Shown: positions 2,252 to 16,225 of the stretch, piece by piece | How the letters are laid out: every line of letters begins with the position of its first letter | Position numbering within the stretch: the stretch's first letter is position 1 | From: Paramicrosporidium saccamoebae KSL3 | Lineage: Eukaryota > Fungi > Cryptomycota | DNA: 16,225 bases | Assembly (NCBI GenBank): GCA_002794465.1 | Contig: MTSL01000169.1 | Coordinates: 311 to 16,535 of the forward strand | Direction of reading: 5' to 3' | The notes under the pieces: generated by a model | Told to the model about the DNA's origin: nothing | What the model saw: the letters and a program-made list of their open reading frames with translations, nothing else | Databases searched by the model: none | Translations under genes and position numbers: made by a program

Positions 2252-3414
2252 CTAGCTCGCATTTCGGTAGTAACGATAGGGGACAAATGGTAATTTGGTG
2301 ACGGAAATTGGATACTGTTTGCCCCGGATTTGGACTGCGAGAGAGGTGGAATTAGCTAGAGATTTCAACCCTTCCACGCTGTCTGCATTGACATATCCCA
2401 TCGAAATGTTGCTGTTGGTGTGTGGTGAAAAGGTACCACTTGTAATTTTGCCAACGACGGATCCATTTTCCAACTCAGTAATTACTGCGCCTTCTCGAGG
2501 CAGTGGTCCCTCTGGACTAGTAAAGCCAAGCCGTTTTTTTGTGACGCCCATCCGCATCTGCATACTCAGGCGATCAAATCCAGGATAGTCTTTGCGGCTT
2601 TTGGATATAATCCATTGTAGGCCAGCTTCGATGGGAGTAACAGTTTCATCAACATCATGCCCGTAAAGACACAGTCCAGCCTCAAGACGGAGAATGTCCC
2701 TCGCAGCCAATCCTGCCAGTTTCACTCTAGCGTCTTTCAGCAACAACTCGGCCATTGAGGGAGCTGCTTCGGGTTTCACGCTAATCTCAAATCCATCCTC
2801 GCCAGTATAACCGCATCTGGTAATTGTAAACTCTGCAGATTCCAGCGAATTCATAAACAACAGGCTCGTGGCCTGATGTTCACTCAGTAATCCACAACTT
2901 ACGACAACATCTATTGCTTCAGGGCCTAAACGTTATCACAGCAAACGGACAGTGCCTTGCAGTGCAAACAGTGCATTCTCGCATACGCTGACATTGTCGC
3001 TTAACAGGGCTAACACTGCATTGACACGCGATGCATTGGACACGAGAGTATAGTTCGATTCTCTCTTTGTTAAAATGGCATCGTCAATAATTCCGCCTTG
3101 TTCATTCAAGATGGCAGTGTATTGGGCAGCACCCACTCGCATCGTCTTGGTGTCGACAGGCATGAGTGATTCCACTAGTTTAGAAGCAGAATGTCCCTCC
3201 AACCTACACTTGGAGCACATGAATTGGGACTGAACCGGCATTGCAGCATGTGCGATACGTCGAATAGTGATGCATGGCGTCTTGTATGTCGCACAGATTC
3301 CAGGACAGATGTTCCGTCAAATTGGATGGGCATTAACCAACCTGCAAAGGGCACCATCTTGCCACCGTTTTGCACAAGAGTCTCGTATAACAGAGTCTTT
3401 CTCAACAAACTCAT
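2252..3414 (-). CDS. GCV1: Aminomethyltransferase (glycine cleavage T protein); exons 3414-3236, 3203-2956, 2925-2252; 366 aa (391 aa if ATG 3489 is used)
   Basis: Motifs LRKT.LY, KMVPFAGW.MPIQF, LFDVSHM, GGIIDD, ALQG|P, TRCGYTGEDGFEI, GLAARD.LRLEAGLCLYG, G.ITSG.FSP, KLPFVP..YY. Two introns restore one reading frame (1101 nt). Confidence 0.95.
2926..2955 (-). other. Spliceosomal intron 2 of GCV1, 30 nt, GC-AG (alternative: 21-nt GT-AG, 2926-2946)
   Basis: Contains in-frame TGA TAA, so it must be removed. AAG|GCACTG...TTTAG|GC restores the invariant LQGP motif. Confidence 0.7.
3204..3235 (-). other. Spliceosomal intron 1 of GCV1, 32 nt, GT-AG
   Basis: GTTCAG...GTGTAG; removal joins HMLQCR to LEGHSASKLVESL and gives exactly the frame shift between the two ORFs. 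Confidence 0.85.
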
Positions 3415-3494
3415 GATAACAGCTAAATGTTTACCCGCATTGTAAGCAAGCCGGGGAATCCAATAGCGAGTGTTTATTTCCACTCTCATACACA

Positions 3495-4178
3495 ATGAGA
3501 CCTTTAAAACATGTCGTTTTTGACATGGACGGACTCTTACTTGACACGGAAAGACTCTACACTCAAGTATATACGGAGCTGCTTGCTCAATGGGGCAAGC
3601 TGTTCACAATGAAATTCAAACTCCGTTTAATGGGTCTGAGTGCCGCCGAGTCTGCCGTGTTGACGGTAAAAGAATACGAACTGCCGGTTGAGCCTGCAGA
3701 GTTTCAGCGAATGGCAATGGAGAAACAATTGGAAGCATTTAAGGAGTGTTCATTAATGCCTGGTGTGGAGAGACTGCTAAAGCATCTTGCGTCCTGTCAT
3801 GTGCCCATGGCAGTGGCCACCAGCTCCAGAAAGGACACCTACACTATTAAAACGGCCTCTCATCCGGAATTGTTCAAGCTATTTACCGTCGTGGTTAACG
3901 GAGACGATCCAGCAGTAAAGCGTGCCAAACCCTTTCCTGATATTTTCCTAACGGCTGCTGAGCGACTTGGAGTCAATCCTGCGACGTGTCTGGCCCTAGA
4001 AGACTCTCCTAACGGAGTGCGATCAGCTCTGGCAGCGGGAATGTCGGTTATTTGGATACCTGACGCCGCACATGATTTCAGTGTGGATCACGATGATCTG
4101 CTTGACCACCCAGAAATACAAAGACTGGCTTCATTAGAGGATTTCCGACCCGAACATTGGGGTCTACCATCTTTCTAA
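3495..4178 (+). CDS. PUDP: HAD-superfamily pseudouridine-5'-phosphatase (HDHD1/GS1-like)
   Basis: Motif I FDMDGLLLDTE, motif II ATSS, motif III KP.PDIF, motif IV EDSPNGV; C-terminal SLEDFRPE.WGLPSF typical of the HDHD1 subfamily. Confidence 0.9.
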   Translation: MRPLKHVVFDMDGLLLDTERLYTQVYTELLAQWGKLFTMKFKLRLMGLSAAESAVLTVKEYELPVEPAEFQRMAMEKQLEAFKECSLMPGVERLLKHLASCHVPMAVATSSRKDTYTIKTASHPELFKLFTVVVNGDDPAVKRAKPFPDIFLTAAERLGVNPATCLALEDSPNGVRSALAAGMSVIWIPDAAHDFSVDHDDLLDHPEIQRLASLEDFRPEHWGLPSF

Positions 4179-4182
4179 TAAA
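4177..4182 (+). terminator. AATAAA polyadenylation-like signal overlapping the PUDP stop codon
   Basis: TAATAAA at 4176-4182; the same arrangement occurs at 5134-5139 after the first B3/4 gene. Confidence 0.4.
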
Positions 4183-4299
4183 TTTACTTTATAGTCTGAA
4201 TGGGTACTGTGGGGTTAATAATGGCCTAGGAGCTTTGATCCGTAACATATTCTCGTACAACAAACATCTTATCTCTCATCTCTACAGTTGTGGTGGTCA

Positions 4300-4335
4300 G
4301 AATGTTCCAAATTGTTCCATTTTGCGATGAGTCAT
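4300..4335 (+). promoter_or_regulatory. Composite HSE-like (GAAtgTTC-N7-TTC, 4300-4317) plus Gcn4/AP-1 site (ATGAGTCAT, 4327-4335)
   Basis: Motifs match known HSF and Gcn4 consensus sequences and are conserved in the paralogue's promoter while the surrounding DNA has diverged. Confidence 0.6.
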
Positions 4336-4402
4336 CCCCCTTGGCGTAAATACAAAAGTCACGCCCCGGCTGGGATAACTTGAGCCACTCGCTTATCTTT
4401 AG

Positions 4403-5134
4403 ATGACCAAGAATCAGTTTGTCCTCGCCCCCGAGATCTTGACCCGCATTCCGGGAATTCGTATCCTTTTGTTTACCCTGCACGCTGTGAGTCAATCCGA
4501 TACCACCCTCCAATCAAAGTGTCAAGAGCTGTTGAATAATTGTTGGCGCGATTGTGGTGCCTTGTTTAACGGTCCTACCTATGCTAATGTGCAATCGCAT
4601 CCTCAACTAGCTGCTTGGCGTGACTGTTTCAAGTCTCTGGGAATCTCTGTCAAGAAGCACGTCTGTTCCGCAGAATCATTGGCAAAACGAGCAGCAAAGG
4701 ATCCCTCACCGCGAAGCATTAATCCGCTCGTAGACTTTTACAACGCAATTTCAATTCGCCATCTGGTGCCGTTTGGAGCATTTGATCGGAAGGATCTGGA
4801 GGGCAAATGTATGTCATTGAGATTCACCAAGGAAGGGGACACCTTCATGCCATTGGACGGTGAGCAGGCAGAGCAATTGCCTGCGGGTGAAGCGGCCTAT
4901 ATCTGTGAACCGGGAACGGTAATCACCCGACACATTAACTACAAACAGTCCAAATTTGCCCTGATCGGGGATGAGTCCCAAGACGTGGTAATGATGGCCG
5001 AGCTGCTCCCGTCAGTTGATGATGCAGCATTGGATAAATTAGCAAACGATCTTAAAGAACAATGCAAACAGCTGTTTAATCAGGAAATTGATCTCAAAAT
5101 CATCACTACTGGAGGTGAAATAGTTTCCTACTAA
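4403..5134 (+). CDS. Stand-alone B3/4-domain protein (PheRS-beta editing-like, tRNA trans-editing family), copy A, 243 aa
   Basis: AWRDCF.SLG...KK..CSAESL.KR...SINPLVDFYNAISI...PFGAFD, FT.EGD.F.PLDG, GE..Y, RH.N..Q match the bacterial B3/4 protein pattern; intronless. Confidence 0.88.
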   Translation: MTKNQFVLAPEILTRIPGIRILLFTLHAVSQSDTTLQSKCQELLNNCWRDCGALFNGPTYANVQSHPQLAAWRDCFKSLGISVKKHVCSAESLAKRAAKDPSPRSINPLVDFYNAISIRHLVPFGAFDRKDLEGKCMSLRFTKEGDTFMPLDGEQAEQLPAGEAAYICEPGTVITRHINYKQSKFALIGDESQDVVMMAELLPSVDDAALDKLANDLKEQCKQLFNQEIDLKIITTGGEIVSY

Positions 5135-5389
5135 ATAAAAAATAATAAACATCCAACGTAATCACATAAAGTTTGACTGCTAGTTGTGAGGTTAGATTCT
5201 GTTAACTAATATGCGCTCAAGATTGGTAATTGTAATAGGTATCCCACAATCATGAGGGTAATATCCTGTAATGATGCCTTTAATAAATATATACTCTTAC
5301 GCATTGACAGAGTTCCCCTGTTGCCCTATTTACGATGGTACCCTGCAAATATTTGGACGGGCTCTGTCTACATGGGACAAATACTGATG

Positions 5390-5424
5390 GAACATTCCAA
5401 TTTATTCCATTGTGGATGAGTCAT
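5390..5424 (+). promoter_or_regulatory. Composite HSE-like (GAAcaTTC-N7-TTC, 5390-5407) plus Gcn4/AP-1 site (ATGAGTCAT, 5416-5424)
   Basis: Same module as 4300-4335, about 50 bp upstream of ATG 5472. Confidence 0.6.
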
Positions 5425-5471
5425 TTCTCGAGACACGACTATTTAGTCGTTCGCTCGGCTGGTGATTATAA

Positions 5472-6203
5472 ATGATTGAAAACCGCTTCTTGCTTGATTC
5501 AGAGATCCAAAGGCGCATCCCAGGAATCCGCATCCTCCTCTTTACTCTGCGCAATGTAAACCAATCGGATCCCGTCCTCCAGGAGAAATGCCAGGAGCTA
5601 TTACAAAGTAGATGGCGTGACTGTCGTGCCTTGTTTACCGGTCCCACTTATGCCGGTGTGCAGTCGCATCCTCAGTTGGCTGCCTGGCGCGACTGCTTTA
5701 AATCGTTGGGCATTCCCATCAAAAAGTTTGTCTGCTCCGCCGAATCTCTGGCAAAGCGCGCCGTCAAGGACCCCGAACCCCGCAGCATTAGTCCTCTCGT
5801 CGATTTCTATAATGCAATCTCGATTCGCCATTTAGTGTCATTTGGAGCCTTTGATCTGCAAAGTCTGCAGGGACGCTGCATGACATTTAGATTTACCAAA
5901 GAGGGCGATGTGTATTCGGCACTGGATGGAACACAAGAGGAGAAAATGCCGGTAGGCGAGGCAGCAAATATCTGCGAACCCAATACAGTGCTCGCTCGAC
6001 ACATGAACTGGAGACAATCCAAATTCGCGTTGATTGGAAACGAGTCAAAGGACGTGGTTATGGTAGCCGCGTTGCTCGAGTCACTGGACAATGCTGCGTT
6101 GGACAAACTGAAGACTGATATCCACGAACAGTGCAAAGTCTTGTTCGATCAGGAAACTGACATCAAGATTATCCACACTGCTGGAGAGGCTGTTCCCTAC
6201 TAA
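5472..6203 (+). CDS. Stand-alone B3/4-domain protein, copy B, 243 aa
   Basis: 174/243 residues identical to copy A (about 72%, ungapped hand count); same family motifs, with RHMNWRQ. Confidence 0.88.
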   Translation: MIENRFLLDSEIQRRIPGIRILLFTLRNVNQSDPVLQEKCQELLQSRWRDCRALFTGPTYAGVQSHPQLAAWRDCFKSLGIPIKKFVCSAESLAKRAVKDPEPRSISPLVDFYNAISIRHLVSFGAFDLQSLQGRCMTFRFTKEGDVYSALDGTQEEKMPVGEAANICEPNTVLARHMNWRQSKFALIGNESKDVVMVAALLESLDNAALDKLKTDIHEQCKVLFDQETDIKIIHTAGEAVPY

Positions 6204-6318: not shown

Positions 6319-7443
6319 TTAACAAAAGCTCTCGGCATGTAGACGATCAATACGGGCTTCAATAGAAGCATCGTCCGAGGAAAAGTATTCGTACCACTTG
6401 CAAGCCGTAGCCACTCTTGTGCTTTGGTACTGCAGATGCTCAATCATCTGGGCTGCCCCTCCGTATGCTGCAACAAAGCGATCGGCAGTATAGATGGTGT
6501 TACGTATGTACCAGCTGGCCAAGGGGTAAACGATAATAACACCAGCCATCATCACAATACTGGAAATAGTGATGGCCGAGACGGGCGGAAAGACCACCCC
6601 GGGATGCTTAGTGAAGCCAAATAAATCGTAAAACGCACCAGTATTTAGGATGTAGAACGAGAGAAGGAGATTGATCAGACCGGGCAAGACTACAAAAGCA
6701 GCCACTTGTATAGGCCTCACTCGACATCCAAGACCGTAAGTAACAGTCGCCCATAAATGTTCAGGCTTGGCAAGAGTCTTTTTGTCAATGTAGATGCGCT
6801 CAGTCAGCAGATTGCGCTGGTAAAAGACACCTGGTTTCTCTGTAATCGCGAGACCAGTGACAGGGAAGCCTTGTCTTTCGCAAAGTTGAAAGACTTTTTC
6901 AGTGCTTGCATCACGCTTAAGAGGCTGGTCGAAATGAAATTGCAGAGGGAACACTGCAAATATTCCAATTCGCACTACAAGTTGGATGACGAGTTGGATG
7001 ACAAGTCCCATCCAGCCCCAATCGGATAGTCGTGTAAACAGTAGCGCAAACATGAACTCTATACCCAGTCGAAGTGACATTTCGCATATCATTAGCAAGG
7101 TCCAGTTAAAACCCGAACCTACCCCAAAATTCAGTACTGCGAAAAAGGTCAAGAACGGCATGAGGTTCATAAAACAATAGGGCCACTTTCCTGCACCTCC
7201 CATAGACTTCTCTATAGCTATCGCCTGTATCCAAAATAATGACAGGGATCCTTTTAGTATCACCCTGCAGTAGCTGGCAAGCAAAACAGCTAAACAGATG
7301 GGCAGCAGGAGAGTGGACCAGGTGCGGCCGGTATTGTTGTATTTAGGCTTCCAGCGCAAGATGTGCACCGTCTGCCAGGCGAGTGAGACCAGGTGGACAC
7401 TTATGATAGTAGCAAAGAAGCTGATGACGTAGGTGCTGTTCAT
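6319..7443 (-). CDS. Ste24/CAAX prenyl protease (peptidase M48A)-like membrane protein, predicted inactive, 374 aa
   Basis: Multiple hydrophobic segments; L....GFP...L, RI.I, ADRF, IEARI align with Ste24. HExxH position reads YGLGC. ATG 7443 is supported by alignment with the paralogue start. Confidence 0.75.
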   Translation of the reverse strand: MNSTYVISFFATIISVHLVSLAWQTVHILRWKPKYNNTGRTWSTLLLPICLAVLLASYCRVILKGSLSLFWIQAIAIEKSMGGAGKWPYCFMNLMPFLTFFAVLNFGVGSGFNWTLLMICEMSLRLGIEFMFALLFTRLSDWGWMGLVIQLVIQLVVRIGIFAVFPLQFHFDQPLKRDASTEKVFQLCERQGFPVTGLAITEKPGVFYQRNLLTERIYIDKKTLAKPEHLWATVTYGLGCRVRPIQVAAFVVLPGLINLLLSFYILNTGAFYDLFGFTKHPGVVFPPVSAITISSIVMMAGVIIVYPLASWYIRNTIYTADRFVAAYGGAAQMIEHLQYQSTRVATACKWYEYFSSDDASIEARIDRLHAESFC

Positions 7444-7610
7444 TTTTCGAATGACTGTGATTGGACCTGCCCCATAATAGGTCCAAGAATCGGTCCACGG
7501 GACGGGATAGGCCAATCCGCGACGCCTAAAGAATAACAACCCCAATCGTACCAAAAATTCCGACCTATAAAAAACGGTCTCTCCATTGTTTGGGCACTAT
7601 GCCGGGGATG

Positions 7611-7722
7611 CCATGCCAGTTAGTGGTTCCTTATCGTCCGTGCCAGTCAGTGGCTCCTTGTCATCCATGCTAGTTAGTGGCTCCTTGTCGTCCATGCTAG
7701 TTAGTGGCTCCTTGTCTTCCAT
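7611..7722. repeat. 27-bp tandem repeat x4 (reads DDKEPLTSM on minus, MLVSGSLSS on plus)
   Basis: Units start at 7611, 7638, 7665 and 7692; an isolated core GGCTCCTTGTC recurs at 7853-7863. Confidence 0.9.
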
Positions 7723-7900: not shown

Positions 7901-9010
7901 CTAACACTCACTCTCCGCAAGTAGAATATCGATGCGGGCCTCAAGGGGGGCATCGGGCATGGAAATGTACTCGTGAGGCTTGCATGACGTGAAGTAGTCC
8001 GTCTCCGTACTCTTCAACAGCTCAGCTAGCTGAGACCCCAATCCAGTTGCTGTGACAAACCTATCCGCAGCATAGGTAGCGCGGCGTGTGTACCAATATT
8101 TCAAGGGCGATAGGGTGGTAGAAACGATTCCCACCATTATGTGGGACATGATGAATGCCGCAGCGTAGGGAATAGGCTCGCCAAAGGTGGCAGAGTAACC
8201 AAACAAGCCATGAATAGCCACGTTTGGGTAAATGTATAGAGACAGGAGGAATCGCACTAATTCCGGCAAGATTTTCGGGATAGCCTCTTGGAGGAGACTA
8301 GTGCGAGAACCGAGACAGTGTGCAACGTCCACCAGCAGTTCTGATGGATACTTGAGCGCCTTGTAGTTGATGTAGATGCGCTCTTTAAACATGCTACGGT
8401 AGTAAAAGACGTCGTTGAGATTCACAGGCACTAACCCAGTCACGGGAAAGTTGTGTATCTCGCAGAGCCGGAAGATTCTTTCAGTATCCTTATTGCGCTC
8501 AAGTTGTGGGCCGTGATGCGACCGTAAAGGGAACGCAGCAAAGAGCCCGACTCTCAGTGCAAGTTGCAGAACTAGCAAAATAACGATTCCCGTCCACCCC
8601 CATGGATAAAACCACGTAGCCAGTCCTGCAAAGATGGCCTCTAAGGCTATCCGAGCGGCCAGTTCGCCCAAACCCACAAACCTCCACGACTCCTCGAGGC
8701 CAAATTCGGGGTCTCGTTTTAACTCTGAAGCTCCCACCCACAATGCGATACAGTTAATACTACAAATAACATCGGGGAGTGGCTGAAGGATCCAGAGCAA
8801 TGGCAGGACAGGTAGTCTTGTCAAAAGAAGATATCCAGTGATTTCGAGGATGGGAACAAAGGGCAGATAGAGGGTGCGTGTACTTTTACCGACCACATGA
8901 TATTTAGGCGTCCATTTTGTGAGGTGTACGGCTTGGAATATAAACGAGACCACTTGCAGAAGCACAACGAACCAAAAAAGGTAATAGAACCAAGCGCCAC
9001 CGTCGTTCAT
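7901..9010 (-). CDS. Second Ste24/M48A-like membrane protein, predicted inactive, 369 aa
   Basis: Colinear with 6319-7443 (W.PKY, LCE...FPVTGL, ERIYI, ADRFV, EARID.L.AES.C). HExxH position reads HCLGS. Confidence 0.75.
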   Translation of the reverse strand: MNDGGAWFYYLFWFVVLLQVVSFIFQAVHLTKWTPKYHVVGKSTRTLYLPFVPILEITGYLLLTRLPVLPLLWILQPLPDVICSINCIALWVGASELKRDPEFGLEESWRFVGLGELAARIALEAIFAGLATWFYPWGWTGIVILLVLQLALRVGLFAAFPLRSHHGPQLERNKDTERIFRLCEIHNFPVTGLVPVNLNDVFYYRSMFKERIYINYKALKYPSELLVDVAHCLGSRTSLLQEAIPKILPELVRFLLSLYIYPNVAIHGLFGYSATFGEPIPYAAAFIMSHIMVGIVSTTLSPLKYWYTRRATYAADRFVTATGLGSQLAELLKSTETDYFTSCKPHEYISMPDAPLEARIDILLAESEC

Positions 9011-9063
9011 ACTTTCGAGATACGGTAATTGATCAGATTTAATCAATATTTAAGTAAGATAGT

Positions 9064-12980: not shown

Positions 12981-13235
12981 GAGTTGTTTAATAGAACGAT
13001 GATAATCATTCCGTGTGTGATGAGTTGTTGAATTGTTGTGTGTGGTTGAGTTATGTGTGGTTGAGTTATGTGTGTACTTATCAGTTTAATGTGTGTGCTT
13101 ATCAGTTTAATGTGTGTGCTTATCAGTTTAATGTGTGTACTTATCAGTTTTACGTGTATGATTACCGAGTTGTTTAATATAACAAGAATAATCATTGCGC
13201 AATAGTTATTTAATTGAACCACGAGAATCATTCTG
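12981..13235. repeat. Nested minisatellite: 33-bp units (12981, 13167, 13203) enclosing 15-bp x2 (13041-13070) and 21-bp x4 (13068-13151) arrays
   Basis: 21-mer ATGTGTGTRCTTATCAGTTTA x4; 15-mer TGTGGTTGAGTTATG x2; 33-mer (G/T)AGTTRTTTAAT..AAC....(T/G)AATCATT x3. Confidence 0.88.
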
Positions 13236-13301: not shown

Positions 13302-14189
13302 ATGGTCACTGTGGGATTAGTCGTTGCAGTGGAATCTCTATGTCGTTGTTTGGATATTTGGGTGCTTTGGAGATGGCCGCGGTCACAGCTGTACAGGTTC
13401 ACAGTGGTGAGGAGAATAGTGCTGGTGGTAAAGTGGATGGTTCATTGGGCGACGGGACAGAGTGAACTTCGAAGACTGTTGGGAGCACCAATTCCGACCA
13501 CTGAGAAAATGTCTCTAATATCTGACTTGCTGAGACATTCCATGGTATTGAGACGACAATGGACGTTACTCATGCGCAGTGACCAATTAGAGTCTGTGGC
13601 ACGACAAATAGCCGCCAAGAAAAAGATACCCTCCAAAGGCACCCTCTTCAAGCTGCTACTAAGTGCCATCCAACAGATCCGCGATGGCAGAATGCTATTC
13701 GACTCGATTGAAAGGCTGTGTCGCACCCCCTATGATCACGACAACCCTGCCCATCGGAAACTACTTGTGCGTTTGTGGACAGCCTGGAAGACCGATCCTC
13801 TGCCGGAGATACCCTCTGAAGAGTGGAAGGAGCTTGGCTTCCAAGGCACCGATCCTGCCACCGACTTTCGCGCCATGGGTCTTTTTGCTCTGCATTGCAT
13901 TGTCGTCTTTGCAGAGTCAAAGAATGGAAAGTCCATCTACAAAGAGGCGCAGTATGGTCCATATTGGTACAGCTTTGCAGTGGTGGCGGTCAATGTGGCC
14001 GATGCCATCCATAGGTATTTGCGGGACGACAGATTGCATTGCTCTGACATGACCATGGTGGATGCAGAGTTCATCAGACTCATGACCAGCTTCCATTCAG
14101 TGTGGATGCAATCTAAACCCGAAAACTTGTTTGCCTTCAACAACATCTTTGCCCACACCTTAGCCATATTTGAAAGATCGCTAATATAA
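13302..14189 (+). CDS. ELMOD2: ELMO domain-containing protein (ELMOD1/2-like ARF/ARL GAP), 295 aa
   Basis: KW.....TG.SEL.R N-terminus, H..LL..LW, WKELGFQG.DP.TDFRAMG, YSFAVV.VN. Confidence 0.88.
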   Translation: MVTVGLVVAVESLCRCLDIWVLWRWPRSQLYRFTVVRRIVLVVKWMVHWATGQSELRRLLGAPIPTTEKMSLISDLLRHSMVLRRQWTLLMRSDQLESVARQIAAKKKIPSKGTLFKLLLSAIQQIRDGRMLFDSIERLCRTPYDHDNPAHRKLLVRLWTAWKTDPLPEIPSEEWKELGFQGTDPATDFRAMGLFALHCIVVFAESKNGKSIYKEAQYGPYWYSFAVVAVNVADAIHRYLRDDRLHCSDMTMVDAEFIRLMTSFHSVWMQSKPENLFAFNNIFAHTLAIFERSLI

Positions 14190-14259: not shown

Positions 14260-15944
14260 ATGTCATTTCCGATAAAGACATCGGTGCCATCATTACTGCC
14301 CCATCCGATGACACCTCACCACACCAACTCGCCCTACAACACGGCCATCAGCAGCCAAACAGTGCTGCGACAGCGTACAATTGCGGCGGCAGAGACGACA
14401 TGGCTGCAAGTCGGTACACTACACACTGCAAACGCTTATTTTTAGCATCGACAGCACAGTTGATGGGGGAGACAGAAAGGACACAGGCAGCATTGGAGAC
14501 GGTGCTGAGACATAATCCATATCATGTGGGTGCGTTTGTCAGTCTGGGCCATTTGCTGCACAACCAGCGACAATACCTGCAAGCCGCAGAGTCGTACCAA
14601 AAAGCAATTTCCCTCGTAGAATCACAGAGTGGAAGCAACTCTCCCCTTCTGACCACTGTTTGGGCCTCCTTGGCCCATTGTTGGCTGTTGTTGGAGGATC
14701 TGCCAAGGGCATTCCAGGCATATCAGCAGGCATTGGGTTATCCGGGAGGAGCCCGGGACTCTACCCTTTGGTTTGGCGTAGGTCTGCTCTATGACCGTTA
14801 TGCTGCTAATGAACACGCTTTGGAGGCATTCTCTGCTGTGCTCAAGTTGGAGGCGCCGAAACAGAGGGCCGTCCCGTCTGCCATGATGAGGGAGGTTTAT
14901 TTCAGGGTTGGAATGCTTCTTCGGTTTCGGAAGAATTACGACGCCGCCCTCGCCTGCTTTGACTATGTTTCAATATTCCCCCCAGCGCCCCTCCAGCGGG
15001 CCGATGTCAAGCTGCAGATGGCCGTCACCTTTGACGCCAAGAACGACCCCGCCTCTGCCCGCATCATTCTCGAACGAAACGTCATCAAGGATAATCGTCC
15101 GTCAGTGGCGGCGCGAGGAAAGGCACTTCTTGGATGGATTCTGGTGCGCAGCGGTCCTCCCGGCGAGGAGGCCAGTCCTGAGCAGGAACACGGTCTGCAG
15201 CTCCTCCGCCAAGTTGTCATTGAGGAGACTGGTGATGCACTGGCATGGTACTACCTCGGACGTGCCTATGTTTATCGCAAAATGTACACTCAATCCTACG
15301 AGGCCTACCAGGAAGCCGTCTATCGAGACTCTCAAAATGCAGCATTTTGGAATTCTATTGGTATTCTATATTTAGAAATCCATCAATTCCGCGACGCCCT
15401 AGATGCCTTTAGTCGTGCCATCCACCAGAATCCATCCATTGCCGAAGTATGGTGGAACTTGGGCATTTTGTACGAGTCGTGCAATAATCAAATCAATGAT
15501 GCGATTGATGCTTACCAGCGGGCTGCTGAGCTTGATCCGACAAATGTGAGCATTAGGAACCGCATTTTGCTTCGGAAGGCAGTGAATAATGGCACCTCTT
15601 CCACGCCCATCCCCGTTGCAGTTCCCATGGAATTGGACCCGCTACCCTATCTTATGCGTCCCATTCTTCTGGGAACGACTAATCTCCCCCTCCAAAAGTC
15701 GGGTCCGCCCTCCACCGCCATGGTCACATCTAATCCTTCCGCAATCTCCCCCTCAATTCCGGGACAGCCCCCACGGATGAACATTTCTGCCAGACCGCGT
15801 CCGCATTCGATGCAACCCGTCCAGCCCTCACATCCAGCGTCGTACCATTCGCTGACCAGACCTCTAATGCGTTCTGGCATGCCACCTCCAATGGTTGCGC
15901 CAAGATTTGGATATGGTGCGCCTACCCGTCCCAATGGTCAGTAG
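14260..15944 (+). CDS. CYC8: Cyc8/Ssn6 TPR general transcriptional corepressor; exons 14260-14413 and 14446-15944; 550 aa
   Basis: E.TWLQVA|STAQLMG...LRHNPY, DLPRAF.AYQQAL, LWFGVGLLYDRY, WY.LGR, YEAYQ.AVYRD..N..FWNSIG.LY, EVWWNLG.LYESCNNQI.DA.DAY.RAAELDP.N; Pro-rich tail. Confidence 0.93.
14414..14445 (+). other. Spliceosomal intron in CYC8, 32 nt, GT-AG
   Basis: G|GTACAC...TTTTTAG|CA, phase 1 on both sides; joins TWLQV to ASTAQLMGE as in Ssn6 TPR1. Confidence 0.88.
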
Positions 15945-16015: not shown

Positions 16016-16225
16016 GGAGTTTGAGGAGTTTGAGGAGTTGGACGAGTTGGAGTTGGAGTTGGAGTTGAAGTTGAGGTTGAAGTTGGAGTTGGAATTGGAA
16101 TTGGACGAGATTAAAAGTGAGATTAAAGGTGGGGTGAGACTAAAGCGAGATGAGATTAAAAGTGAGATGAGACTAAAAGTGAGATTAAAGGTGGGGTGAG
16201 ACTAAAGCGAGATGAGATTAAAAGT
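16016..16225. repeat. Satellite: GRAGTT-type 6/9-mers grading into GAGAYTAAAAGT 12-mers with a 62-bp higher-order period; runs off the window
   Basis: 16107-16168 is repeated at 16169-16225 (partial) with one substitution. Confidence 0.9.

Follow-up and report, generated by a model that had tools for sequence, protein, structure and literature searches.

The occurrence of two genes encoding free-standing B3/4 domain proteins, arranged in tandem, in the genome of Paramicrosporidium saccamoebae (Rozellomycota; assembly GCA_002794465.1) raises two questions: whether a eukaryote has recently recruited a tRNA-editing-type gene from bacteria, and what the two proteins might do. The window analyzed here, i.e., the whole stretch of 16,225 nucleotides that contains the pair (Table 1), belongs to contig MTSL01000169.1 (181,930 bp). 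The products are identical at 174 of 243 positions (72%) and align with 0 gaps (BLASTP; E 2e-135). Both can be aligned end to end with homologs of 230–245 aa (coverage, 92–100%), so both reading frames are full length and require no intron. The gene pair is real and far beyond chance, and reading frames, BLASTP, and Pfam agree with the first-pass annotation, which had described two intronless, full-length copies without indels. Intronless genes are the majority in the window; a scan of the window for tRNA genes and Rfam matches yielded none.

Table 1. Features of the tandem B3/4 locus (positions in the window).
Feature	Position	Strand	Details
Conserved upstream block, copy 1	4300..4335	+	68–103 nt before ATG; contains GAATGTTC and ATGAGTCAT
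B3/4 copy 1, CDS including stop	4403..5134	+	243 aa; ORF list, Pfam B3_4 65 bits
Conserved upstream block, copy 2	5390..5424	+	48–82 nt before ATG; GAACATTC ... ATGAGTCAT
B3/4 copy 2, paralog	5472..6203	+	243 aa; ORF list, Pfam B3_4 62 bits

Both copies match the B3_4 family of Pfam (PF03483; 65.0 and 62.3 bits, gathering cut-off 29.3 bits), and the sequence of copy 1 matches the structures of CtdA from Salmonella enterica (9mkl; 1e-15) and Pseudomonas canavaninivorans (9f7e; 2e-14) in the PDB. For copy 1, AlphaFold predicts a structure (pLDDT 95.6) in which residues 34–55, 67–78, and 89–99 are helical. Its best Foldseek matches are the same two CtdA structures, over the full length (TM 0.80–0.86; ~235 columns) and including the long helical insert; bacterial PheRS-beta subunits follow next. 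The predicted fold is thus that of the B3/B4 editing domain of PheRS-beta with a long helical insert of the CtdA type. Like CtdA (~230–243 aa), both copies are free-standing and consist of a single domain with a B3/B4 core and a long IS1 helical insert, within the size range of the broad CtdA family (~180–260 aa), but share only 24–26% identity with the characterized proteins.

The two other identities considered were rejected. A PheRS beta subunit is ruled out because the scores for the pheT equivalog TIGR00472 (25 and 15 bits) are far below its cut-off (402.65), the aligned part is the B3/4 segment alone, and the other domains of PheRS-beta are absent. Bacterial PheRS-beta subunits have an Asn residue and the fold of the core in common with the pair (E values of 1e-7 to 1e-5 in Foldseek), and their P-M-H-A-F-D resembles the local motif P-F-G-A-F-D, but the position of their His265 is occupied by Gly, the inserts are of the CtdA type, and identity is 11–15%. 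An LRRC47-type protein is ruled out by the lack of an LRR match to either copy in a profile search and by the LRRC47 structure 8xp3, which ranks only 31st in the Foldseek list (TM 0.38). Stand-alone homologs of synthetase editing domains that clear mis-acylated tRNA in trans are represented also by AlaX, ProXp/YbaK, DTD, and ThrRS-ed, which follow the same logic but are unrelated in fold and substrate.

The CtdA family is about 89% bacterial (PMC12449066), in agreement with the first-pass annotation, which had called stand-alone B3/4 proteins mainly prokaryotic. This bias is all that speaks for bacterial contamination or a chimeric assembly, whose probability we consider negligible. The genes are internal to the 182-kb contig and flanked on both sides by eukaryotic genes (DUF2039, GcvT with an intron, HAD, LisH-WD40, ELMO, and TPR). 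Their composition is native and shows no anomaly relative to the neighbors, both in GC (copy 1, 0.48; copy 2, 0.50; neighbors, 0.47–0.55) and in GC3 (0.50 and 0.57; neighbors, 0.46–0.57), and their nearest relatives are eukaryotic. The eukaryotic surroundings already noted in the initial annotation are therefore genuine.

These closest relatives are 44–47% identical to the Paramicrosporidium proteins, and environmental relatives of the same lineage reach 69–90%, whereas bacterial relatives reach 33–42%. Relatives in eukaryotic gene contexts were found in Vittaforma corneae (P0077) and in four opisthokont-like contig lineages; besides P0077, the sequences with such contexts are P0007, P0008, P0010, P0011, and P0069. 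The UPF1 encoded at one of these loci (L004) has its best named matches among many fungi (including Rozella) and animals, all at 53–60%, which indicates that the contigs are opisthokont and likely fungus-like. A gene model of Rotaria sordida (P0093) contains an intron; Anncaliia algerae contributes a named copy in an uninformative context. The microsporidian homologs (VICG_02064 of V. corneae and H312_02751 of A. algerae, uncharacterized B3/B4 tRNA-binding-domain proteins) and CtdA-like proteins of Ascomycota, which are likewise uncharacterized (e.g., KAH9985938.1 of Xylariaceae sp. and KAI4116196.1 of Seirophora villosa), have the same length and the same or nearly the same signature (YNSGFDYTRH[IL]QE; Phe at position 177 in Anncaliia). 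They fall into the same clade or its sister clade and share 34–40% identity with the Paramicrosporidium proteins.

In bootstrapped neighbor-joining trees, the only type of tree computed, with two distance measures, the core eukaryotic clade has bootstrap values of 74, 77, 94, and 92. The copies of Ascomycota form its nearest outgroup or a weak sister group (bootstrap of the common node, 41–59), and the eukaryotic clade is nested within the bacterial diversity, not sister to it; a bacterial sister group was not resolved in these trees. This placement indicates that the pair is not a fresh bacterial import but part of a eukaryotic branch that is old, although most of the family is bacterial. The gene family would have entered or arisen in eukaryotes long before P. 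saccamoebae existed.

A recent, lineage-specific transfer from bacteria into Paramicrosporidium, followed by duplication, would agree with the bacterial predominance in the family, with the identity to bacterial relatives, and with the absence of introns. It is nevertheless very improbable, because the nearest relatives are eukaryotic or belong to the same lineage, the pair lies inside the eukaryotic clade (bootstrap 74–94), GC and GC3 are native, synonymous sites are saturated between the copies (see below), and most genes of the window lack introns anyway. A recent transfer should entail absence from related eukaryotes, but homologs are known from Microsporidia, Ascomycota, and rotifers as well as from further contigs of eukaryotes. 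Moreover, eukaryotic members of the CtdA family are known from a study set that included 94 eukaryotes, and were inferred to have been transferred from bacteria at least twice (PMC12449066, NAR 2025). The notable, organism-specific horizontal acquisition proposed in the first-pass annotation is therefore not supported, and the perspective of horizontal transfer adds little, because such genes of lower eukaryotes have already been published.

Relatives do exist in other eukaryotes, but relationships within the clade in the neighbor-joining trees do not match the species tree. The latter result bears on the possibility that no bacterial transfer took place and that an ancestral eukaryotic or opisthokont gene descended vertically with massive loss. 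The tendency of Rozellomycota, Microsporidia, Ascomycota, rotifers, and further lineages to form one clade (bootstrap 41–59) and the eukaryote-style fusions of some members fit such a history, which is unlikely given the very patchy distribution, the nesting within bacterial diversity, the at least two transfers from bacteria in the published analysis (PMC12449066), and a branching order in which Paramicrosporidium is separated from Microsporidia and rotifer sequences fall inside the clade. A eukaryote-type copy is present also in Amoebophilaceae endosymbionts, which shows that the gene is exchanged across domains among organisms with an intracellular life.

Within the old eukaryotic branch, copy 1 groups with P0002 (bootstrap 89–100), then with copy 2 (82–98), and only then with P0004, an order indicating that the duplication took place after the lineage of Paramicrosporidium had become separate. 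In comparison with the microsporidian and ascomycete relatives, this lineage alone has the genes in tandem, the second being divergent; no second copy was seen at the Vittaforma and Anncaliia loci examined. The duplication is old, as synonymous sites are saturated (pS 0.81) and dN is 0.19. Similarity between the two units is confined to the coding regions and the upstream block, and no flanking repeats mark the duplication event. The copies have evolved asymmetrically: copy 2 has accumulated 31 unique changes versus 9 in copy 1 (3.4-fold faster; Tajima relative-rate test, p=5e-4), and of 36 positions conserved in the family, 8 are altered in copy 2 and 2 in copy 1. An ortholog of copy 2 was absent from all databases searched, and metagenome scans for such an ortholog or for closer relatives yielded nothing above 46% identity.

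The catalytic residues of CtdA (Y104/N105/S108, G116, and Q173; PMC12268091, PMC12449066) correspond to Y113/N114/S117, G125, and Q182; both copies contain all five, and the clade as a whole is near-invariant at these positions. Most of the basic rim of CtdA is present as well, with K85, K95, R96, K99, R176, and K/R181 kept in both copies. The substrate pocket is different. In CtdA, Glu118 forms the acidic pocket floor and its replacement (E118Q) abolishes activity, as does E191V; Cys166 has been described as strictly conserved and as a modulator of specificity, and the variants C166A and C166S are still active on Can-tRNA. At the position of Glu118, both copies and each of the 47 core-clade members have Phe127. 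Cys166 corresponds to Thr175 (copy 1) or Ala175 (copy 2), and Glu191 to Glu200 (copy 1) or Ala200 (copy 2). Of the three residues of the canavanine pocket, copy 1 thus lacks two and copy 2 all three. In addition, R168 is replaced by His and W169 by Ile or Met. The signature of copy 1 (YNSGFDYTRHIQE) is canonical for the clade, that of copy 2 (YNSGFDNARHMQA) is not identical to it, and the type F127/T175/H177/E200 is common to all eukaryotic members sampled and to many bacteria.

A pocket of this type, with a single acidic residue at its floor, makes canavanyl-tRNA(Arg) an unlikely substrate; most likely, the specificity is for something other than canavanine. That both proteins are true CtdA orthologs, i.e., canavanyl-tRNA(Arg) deacylases that guard against canavanine, is suggested by the common fold and length, the conserved catalytic residues, the tolerance of CtdA for Ala or Ser at position 166, and the assignment of all sampled eukaryotic sequences to 'CtdA-1' (NAR 2025 tree, PMC12449066). 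We regard it as quite unlikely in view of the Phe in place of the essential Glu118 throughout the clade, the further replacements in the pocket, and the low identity to CtdA; an intranuclear parasite of amoebae also presumably has no evident source of canavanine. Of the initial description as tRNA-editing-type proteins, the relationship to CtdA is supported by Pfam, PDB, and Foldseek and an editing role is the best reading, but a CtdA-like substrate is doubtful in view of the replaced pocket residues.

Further evidence against canavanyl-tRNA comes from fusions with aminoacyl-tRNA synthetases. Domains fused to ArgRS have E127 in 5 of 5 and C175 in 4 of 5 cases, and the F/T/H signature, which is the type of the Paramicrosporidium proteins, in none of the 5. 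Fusions with TyrRS have H127/T175 (His type), and two fusions with class II LysRS (P0217 and P0087), both within the eukaryotic clade, have F127/T175. Pocket type thus tracks the fused synthetase across the family: the CtdA type accompanies ArgRS, and the His type accompanies TyrRS. The link to LysRS is based on two gene models. The Rotaria LysRS fusion, in which a low-complexity linker is followed by a separate Met, could be a merged gene model; the contig that carries the fusion P0217 was sought but not found. Two further observations speak against the link: a tblastn search for adjacent synthetase or GNAT genes at 129 loci gave one match, a TyrRS beside a bacterial F-type gene (L024), and one bacterial F-type domain is fused to GNAT. 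Tentatively, two independent eukaryotic fusions with class II LysRS hint at a mis-acylated tRNA(Lys) as substrate. Both proteins are most likely aminoacyl-tRNA deacylases, possibly acting on tRNA-Lys.

In the proposed mechanism, the basic rim would grip the CCA-3' end of the aminoacyl-tRNA and the central pocket would receive the aminoacyl moiety. A water molecule placed by Tyr113-Asn114 together with Ser117, Gly125, and Gln182 would hydrolyze the ester bond and free the wrongly attached amino acid, with the enzyme acting in trans. The pocket of copy 1 represents the ancestral state. Copy 2 has retained the catalytic and tRNA-binding residues, with three pocket residues changed to smaller and uncharged ones (Y166N, T175A, and E200A).

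Because E200A matches the position of CtdA E191, where E191V abolishes activity, copy 2 might be inactive. A dead pseudoenzyme, e.g., with a tRNA-binding or regulatory role, or a gene heading for loss would explain the deviations at conserved positions, the accelerated evolution, and the lack of an ortholog in the databases searched. Such a fate is rather doubtful, as the reading frame has stayed intact and free of indels despite synonymous saturation, with a dN of only 0.19, the catalytic residues and the entire basic rim are kept, and the upstream block is conserved; moreover, three changes all to smaller residues suggest that the pocket was reshaped, not destroyed. Copy 2 has probably undergone a shift in specificity, and a loss of activity is less likely.

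The blocks upstream of the two genes (Table 1) match in 30 of 36 columns, with a local alignment score of 23 that was not reached by any of 1,000 shuffles (12.2 ± 1.9). They contain the only two ATGASTCAT sites in the window (expected, 0.23); ATGAGTCAT corresponds to the Gcn4/AP-1-type bZIP consensus, and GAATGTTC has the form GAAnnTTC, which resembles a heat-shock element. By analogy with these known consensus sequences, the block is a candidate for a shared promoter element.

Taken together, we consider it likely that the locus comprises two native, anciently duplicated genes of the CtdA fold, with a distinct pocket type, that encode putative trans-acting deacylases. To our knowledge, LysRS is generally held to have no such editing domain. 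A more speculative scenario, which we put forward with considerable reserve, is that the F127/T175/H177/E200 type represents an unrecognized post-transfer editing activity for class II LysRS, directed at a lysine analog or another amino acid on tRNA(Lys), that copy 2 was retooled for a second substrate, and that a shared promoter element (GAAnnTTC and ATGAGTCAT) responding to stress or amino acid control drives both copies.

What is new is that the eukaryotic genes, including the Paramicrosporidium pair, have a pocket unlike that of the sole characterized enzyme, which makes it probable that more than one specificity exists within the family, i.e., several. The correlation of pocket type with a fused ArgRS, TyrRS, or LysRS provides concrete hypotheses about the substrates. 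With one copy in the ancestral state and the other remodeled, the Paramicrosporidium pair represents a natural system for the evolution of editing specificity.

The tandem B3/4 genes of Paramicrosporidium saccamoebae are real and native to its genome. The two copies are identical at 174 of 243 positions (72%) with no gaps, which reproduces the identity given in the first-pass annotation, and they match the Pfam family B3_4 at 65 and 62 bits (copies 1 and 2, respectively; cut-off 29.3). Both ORFs match homologues of 230–245 amino acids over their whole length and so are complete and need no introns, again as first described. The pair is surrounded by eukaryotic genes (DUF2039, an intron-split GcvT, a HAD phosphatase, a CRT10-like WD protein, LisH-WD40, ELMO, and TPR) and embedded in a contig of 181,930 bp (MTSL01000169.1 of GCA_002794465.1); the genome (MTSL00000000) is that of a rozellid that lives as an intranuclear parasite of amoebae (PMC5701793). 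GC and GC3 of both copies are in line with the neighbouring genes. The plainly eukaryotic neighbours on this long contig exclude bacterial contamination and bear out the native setting initially claimed for the pair.

Coordinates of features in the window and of the B3/4 genes on two bacterial contigs
Feature	Location	Strand	Remarks
Upstream block, copy 1	4300-4335		30/36 columns identical to copy 2 block
B3/4 copy 1	4403-5134	+	ORF, 243 codons
Upstream block, copy 2	5390-5424		30/36 columns identical to copy 1 block
B3/4 copy 2	5472-6203	+	ORF, 243 codons
Membrane protein	6319-7554	-	multi-pass
Tandem repeat array	7611-7722		27 nt x 4.1; encodes 'DDKEPLT' repeat in minus-strand ORF
Membrane protein	7901-9046	-	multi-pass
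Tandem repeat arrays	13035-13157		15 and 21 nt units; intergenic, GC-skewed stretch
ELMO ORF	13302-14189	+	
TPR ORF	14400-15944	+	
Tandem repeat arrays	16016-16225		3' end of window; 6-62 nt units, GAGTTG/GAGACTAAA type
B3/4 gene	L008:2989-3708		JAIETQ010000073.1, contig binned as Amoebophilaceae MAG
B3/4 gene	L050:6001-6720		ERZ19025701 scaffold_297

A second tandem pair adjoins the B3/4 genes and encodes multi-pass membrane proteins of 411 and 381 amino acids (37% identical, E 1e-73), whose C-termini share the conserved sequence ...EARID.L.AES.C; neither member matches a Pfam family. ELMO and TPR read as separate long ORFs in the window, but the public annotation (locus L001, 13650 onward) joins them into one gene of 835 amino acids; either the merging of two gene models or splicing may account for this.

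Among solved structures, the best sequence matches of the two copies are to the canavanyl-tRNA(Arg) deacylase CtdA of Salmonella (9MKL, E 1e-15) and Pseudomonas canavaninivorans (9F7E, E 2e-14); bacterial PheRS-beta is matched only weakly, and the bacterial pheT equivalog model is far from reached (25 bits, cut-off 403). An AlphaFold model of copy 1, computed from an 18-sequence alignment (pLDDT 95.6, pTM 0.91), retrieves the same two CtdA structures as top Foldseek matches (TM 0.80–0.86 over ~235 columns, 24–26% identity), followed by the B3/B4 domains of bacterial PheRS-beta, with LRRC47 and archaeal/eukaryal PheRS ranking far lower. Sequence and fold matches thus agree with the family originally assigned, and both copies are free-standing CtdA-fold proteins.

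These genes belong to an old eukaryotic lineage of the family. In a word-indexed search with copy 1, identity falls from two environmental relatives (P0002, 90%; P0004, 69%) to 44–47%, and four of the latter matches lie on long contigs with unmistakably eukaryotic neighbours (Rap-GAP, BAR, PTEN-C2, and BRF1; LSM, Rer1, UCH, and Piezo; UPF1, NTF2, histone H2A, and Yme1). The UPF1 on one of these contigs is 53–60% identical to that of many fungi (including Rozella) and animals, and the organisms behind such contigs are unplaced opisthokonts. A profile search brought in two named microsporidia, Vittaforma corneae (VICG_02064) and Anncaliia algerae (H312_02751), as well as the bdelloid rotifer Rotaria sordida. 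Eukaryotic neighbours also surround the Vittaforma gene and the homologue P0069; the Anncaliia contig is gene-sparse and its context uninformative. The Rotaria gene model contains introns. Rotaria sordida has at least two paralogues (84% identical), one free-standing (L055:8169-8861, CAJNOT010002165.1), whose very short first exon, 2 kb upstream, is doubtful, and the other (P0087) joined to the end of a LysRS in the gene model.

Among GTDB species genomes, the best bacterial relatives (Ktedonobacterales, Rubrobacteraceae, Gemmatimonadota, and Firmicutes) are 33–42% identical. Bootstrapped neighbour-joining trees of 215–305 sequences under two distance measures recover a core eukaryotic clade of 47–48 sequences (bootstrap 74, 77, 94, and 92), whose nearest outgroup is a small clade identified by cluster look-up as Ascomycota (Xylariaceae sp., Seirophora villosa). 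The joint clade (bootstrap 41–59) is nested within a bacterial radiation with an unresolved backbone. This placement agrees with a published survey, which counted 94 eukaryotic reference proteomes with the family, most of them from Ascomycota, and inferred at least two transfers from bacteria to lower eukaryotes (NAR 2025, PMC12449066). Eukaryotic relatives and trees together identify the Paramicrosporidium genes as long-standing rather than a recent import. The horizontal acquisition proposed for this locus is therefore at best an ancient, already published event and no property of this particular locus: bacteria do enclose the eukaryotic members in the phylogeny, but the pair lies inside the eukaryotic clade, with native GC and GC3, and no recent Paramicrosporidium-specific import is seen.

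A member of the core eukaryotic clade is also present on two syntenic bacterial contigs (L008 and L050), among genes for sigma-54, CvpA, PssA, TrpRS, ankyrin, LepA, PS decarboxylase, and SHMT. The gene is intact on one contig, where its product (P0072) shares 72% identity with the Vittaforma corneae protein, whereas on L008 one TCA-to-TGA nonsense substitution (3208-3210) breaks it; its GC3 (0.40) exceeds that of its bacterial neighbours (0.27–0.35). Its position within the microsporidian sub-clade (bootstrap 100) suggests an inter-domain transfer between intracellular organisms, which looks like one from a microsporidian-like eukaryote to an intracellular bacterium, this direction being tentative.

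The two Paramicrosporidium copies start 1,069 nt apart and share 69% nucleotide identity, with 57/38/132 differences at the three codon positions. Synonymous sites are past saturation (proportion of differences, 0.81), and dN is 0.19. The duplication is ancient, and purifying selection has maintained both copies. In the trees, copy 1 groups with P0002 (89–100), then with copy 2 (82–98), P0004 (91–98), and P0005 (100); the duplication therefore occurred after the split of the P0004 lineage and before that of the P0002 organism. With P0004 as outgroup, copy 2 has 31 unique changes and copy 1 has 9 (p = 5e-4). At 36 positions conserved at ≥85% in the family, copy 2 departs from the consensus at eight (N107S, I118, which is common to copy 1, P123S, L139F, F148Y, Y166N, T175A, and E200A) and copy 1 at two. 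Y166N, T175A, and E200A affect pocket-lining positions, and each brings in a smaller, uncharged residue. No orthologue of copy 2 was found in any database searched.

Mutations Y104F, N105D, E118Q, and E191V each abolish the activity of Pseudomonas CtdA, whose functional residues are Y104, N105, S108, E118, C166, and E191 (PMC12268091); those of the Salmonella enzyme are N105, G116, C166, and Q173, of which C166 modulates specificity, with C166A and C166S still active on Can-tRNA (PMC12449066). Mapped by HMMER and a 28-sequence alignment, both copies retain Y113, N114, S117, G125, and Q182, and six of the nine residues of the basic rim (K85, K95, R96, K99, R176, and K/R181). By contrast, E118, C166, R168, and W169 of CtdA are replaced by Phe127, Thr175 (copy 1) or Ala175 (copy 2), His177, and Ile/Met178. 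At 13 pocket positions compared across 277 family members, copy 1 has the signature YNSGFDYTRHIQE, which is that of most members of the eukaryotic clade; many bacterial members carry the similar YNSGFDYTRHFQE, and CtdA-type sequences have YNSGE[DN][WY]CRRWQ[DE]. What is conserved is the catalytic machinery together with the tRNA-binding face, but not the canavanine-recognizing part of the pocket. Since defining pocket residues are absent, the function of CtdA, which the first reading had cited as the characterised member, should not be carried over to these copies.

The upstream regions of the copies are unalignable except for a block of 36 nt (local score 23; shuffles 12.2±1.9, 0/1000 reaching it), which begins with GAAnnTTC, the core of the heat-shock element, and ends with ATGAGTCAT. 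The latter 9-mer occurs twice in the whole window, both times in these blocks (expected 0.23); ATGA(C/G)TCAT is the Gcn4/AP-1 bZIP consensus. The block suggests that B3/4 genes may be under amino-acid or proteotoxic stress control. In the homologous locus L004, a similar TGAGTCA precedes the B3/4 gene (at 8001) by about 66 nt; in L005, a close relative of L004, it overlaps the called start at 8001, which is probably an upstream extension of the ORF. No such motif precedes the genes of the other orthologous loci inspected (L002, L003, L047, L048, and L052).

An exhaustive profile search yielded 2,714 clusters (E≤1e-3), and many fusions are present among the best 150 representatives, in which they were sought; the published survey took only sequences of 180–260 amino acids and does not mention fusions (PMC12449066). 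In the HMM alignment, the pocket signature sorts with the fusion partner. Domains fused to ArgRS (P0179, P0228, P0239, P0258, and P0260) have E127 in all five cases and C175, the CtdA signature, in four, and a class I LysRS fusion (P0259) has D127/C175. All six TyrRS fusions (P0212, P0221, P0241, P0250, P0276, and P0263) have H127/T175 with D200, five have R/K177-W178, and five fall into a clade of their own (bootstrap 90). The eukaryote-typical F127/T175/H177 domain is found C-terminal to a class II LysRS in P0217 and Rotaria sordida P0087, on two different sub-branches of the eukaryotic clade. Their flanks match human LysRS 401–510 (E 6e-46 and 1e-25; AspRS, ~1e-11), with the caveats that P0217 has not been traced to a contig and that the B3/4 part of P0087 carries a Met of its own behind a low-complexity linker, so that P0087 may be a merged gene model. 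P0118 joins a domain of the same F127/T175/H177 type to a GNAT acetyltransferase; other fusions involve tRNA_bind (P0254), an OB anticodon-binding domain (P0298), and ankyrin (P0289). A further caveat is the sole synthetase adjacency among 129 loci screened, in a Ktedonobacterales MAG (L024), where a bacterial gene of the F127/T175/H177 type (3001-3702) precedes a TyrRS gene (4147-5286) by ~450 nt.

The Paramicrosporidium locus is a tandem, asymmetrically diverged pair of CtdA-fold putative deacylases with a pocket type that lacks a characterised member. The copies would be aminoacyl-tRNA deacylases with a substrate other than canavanyl-tRNA(Arg), for which one linked to tRNA(Lys) is the best current guess, to be held tentatively.
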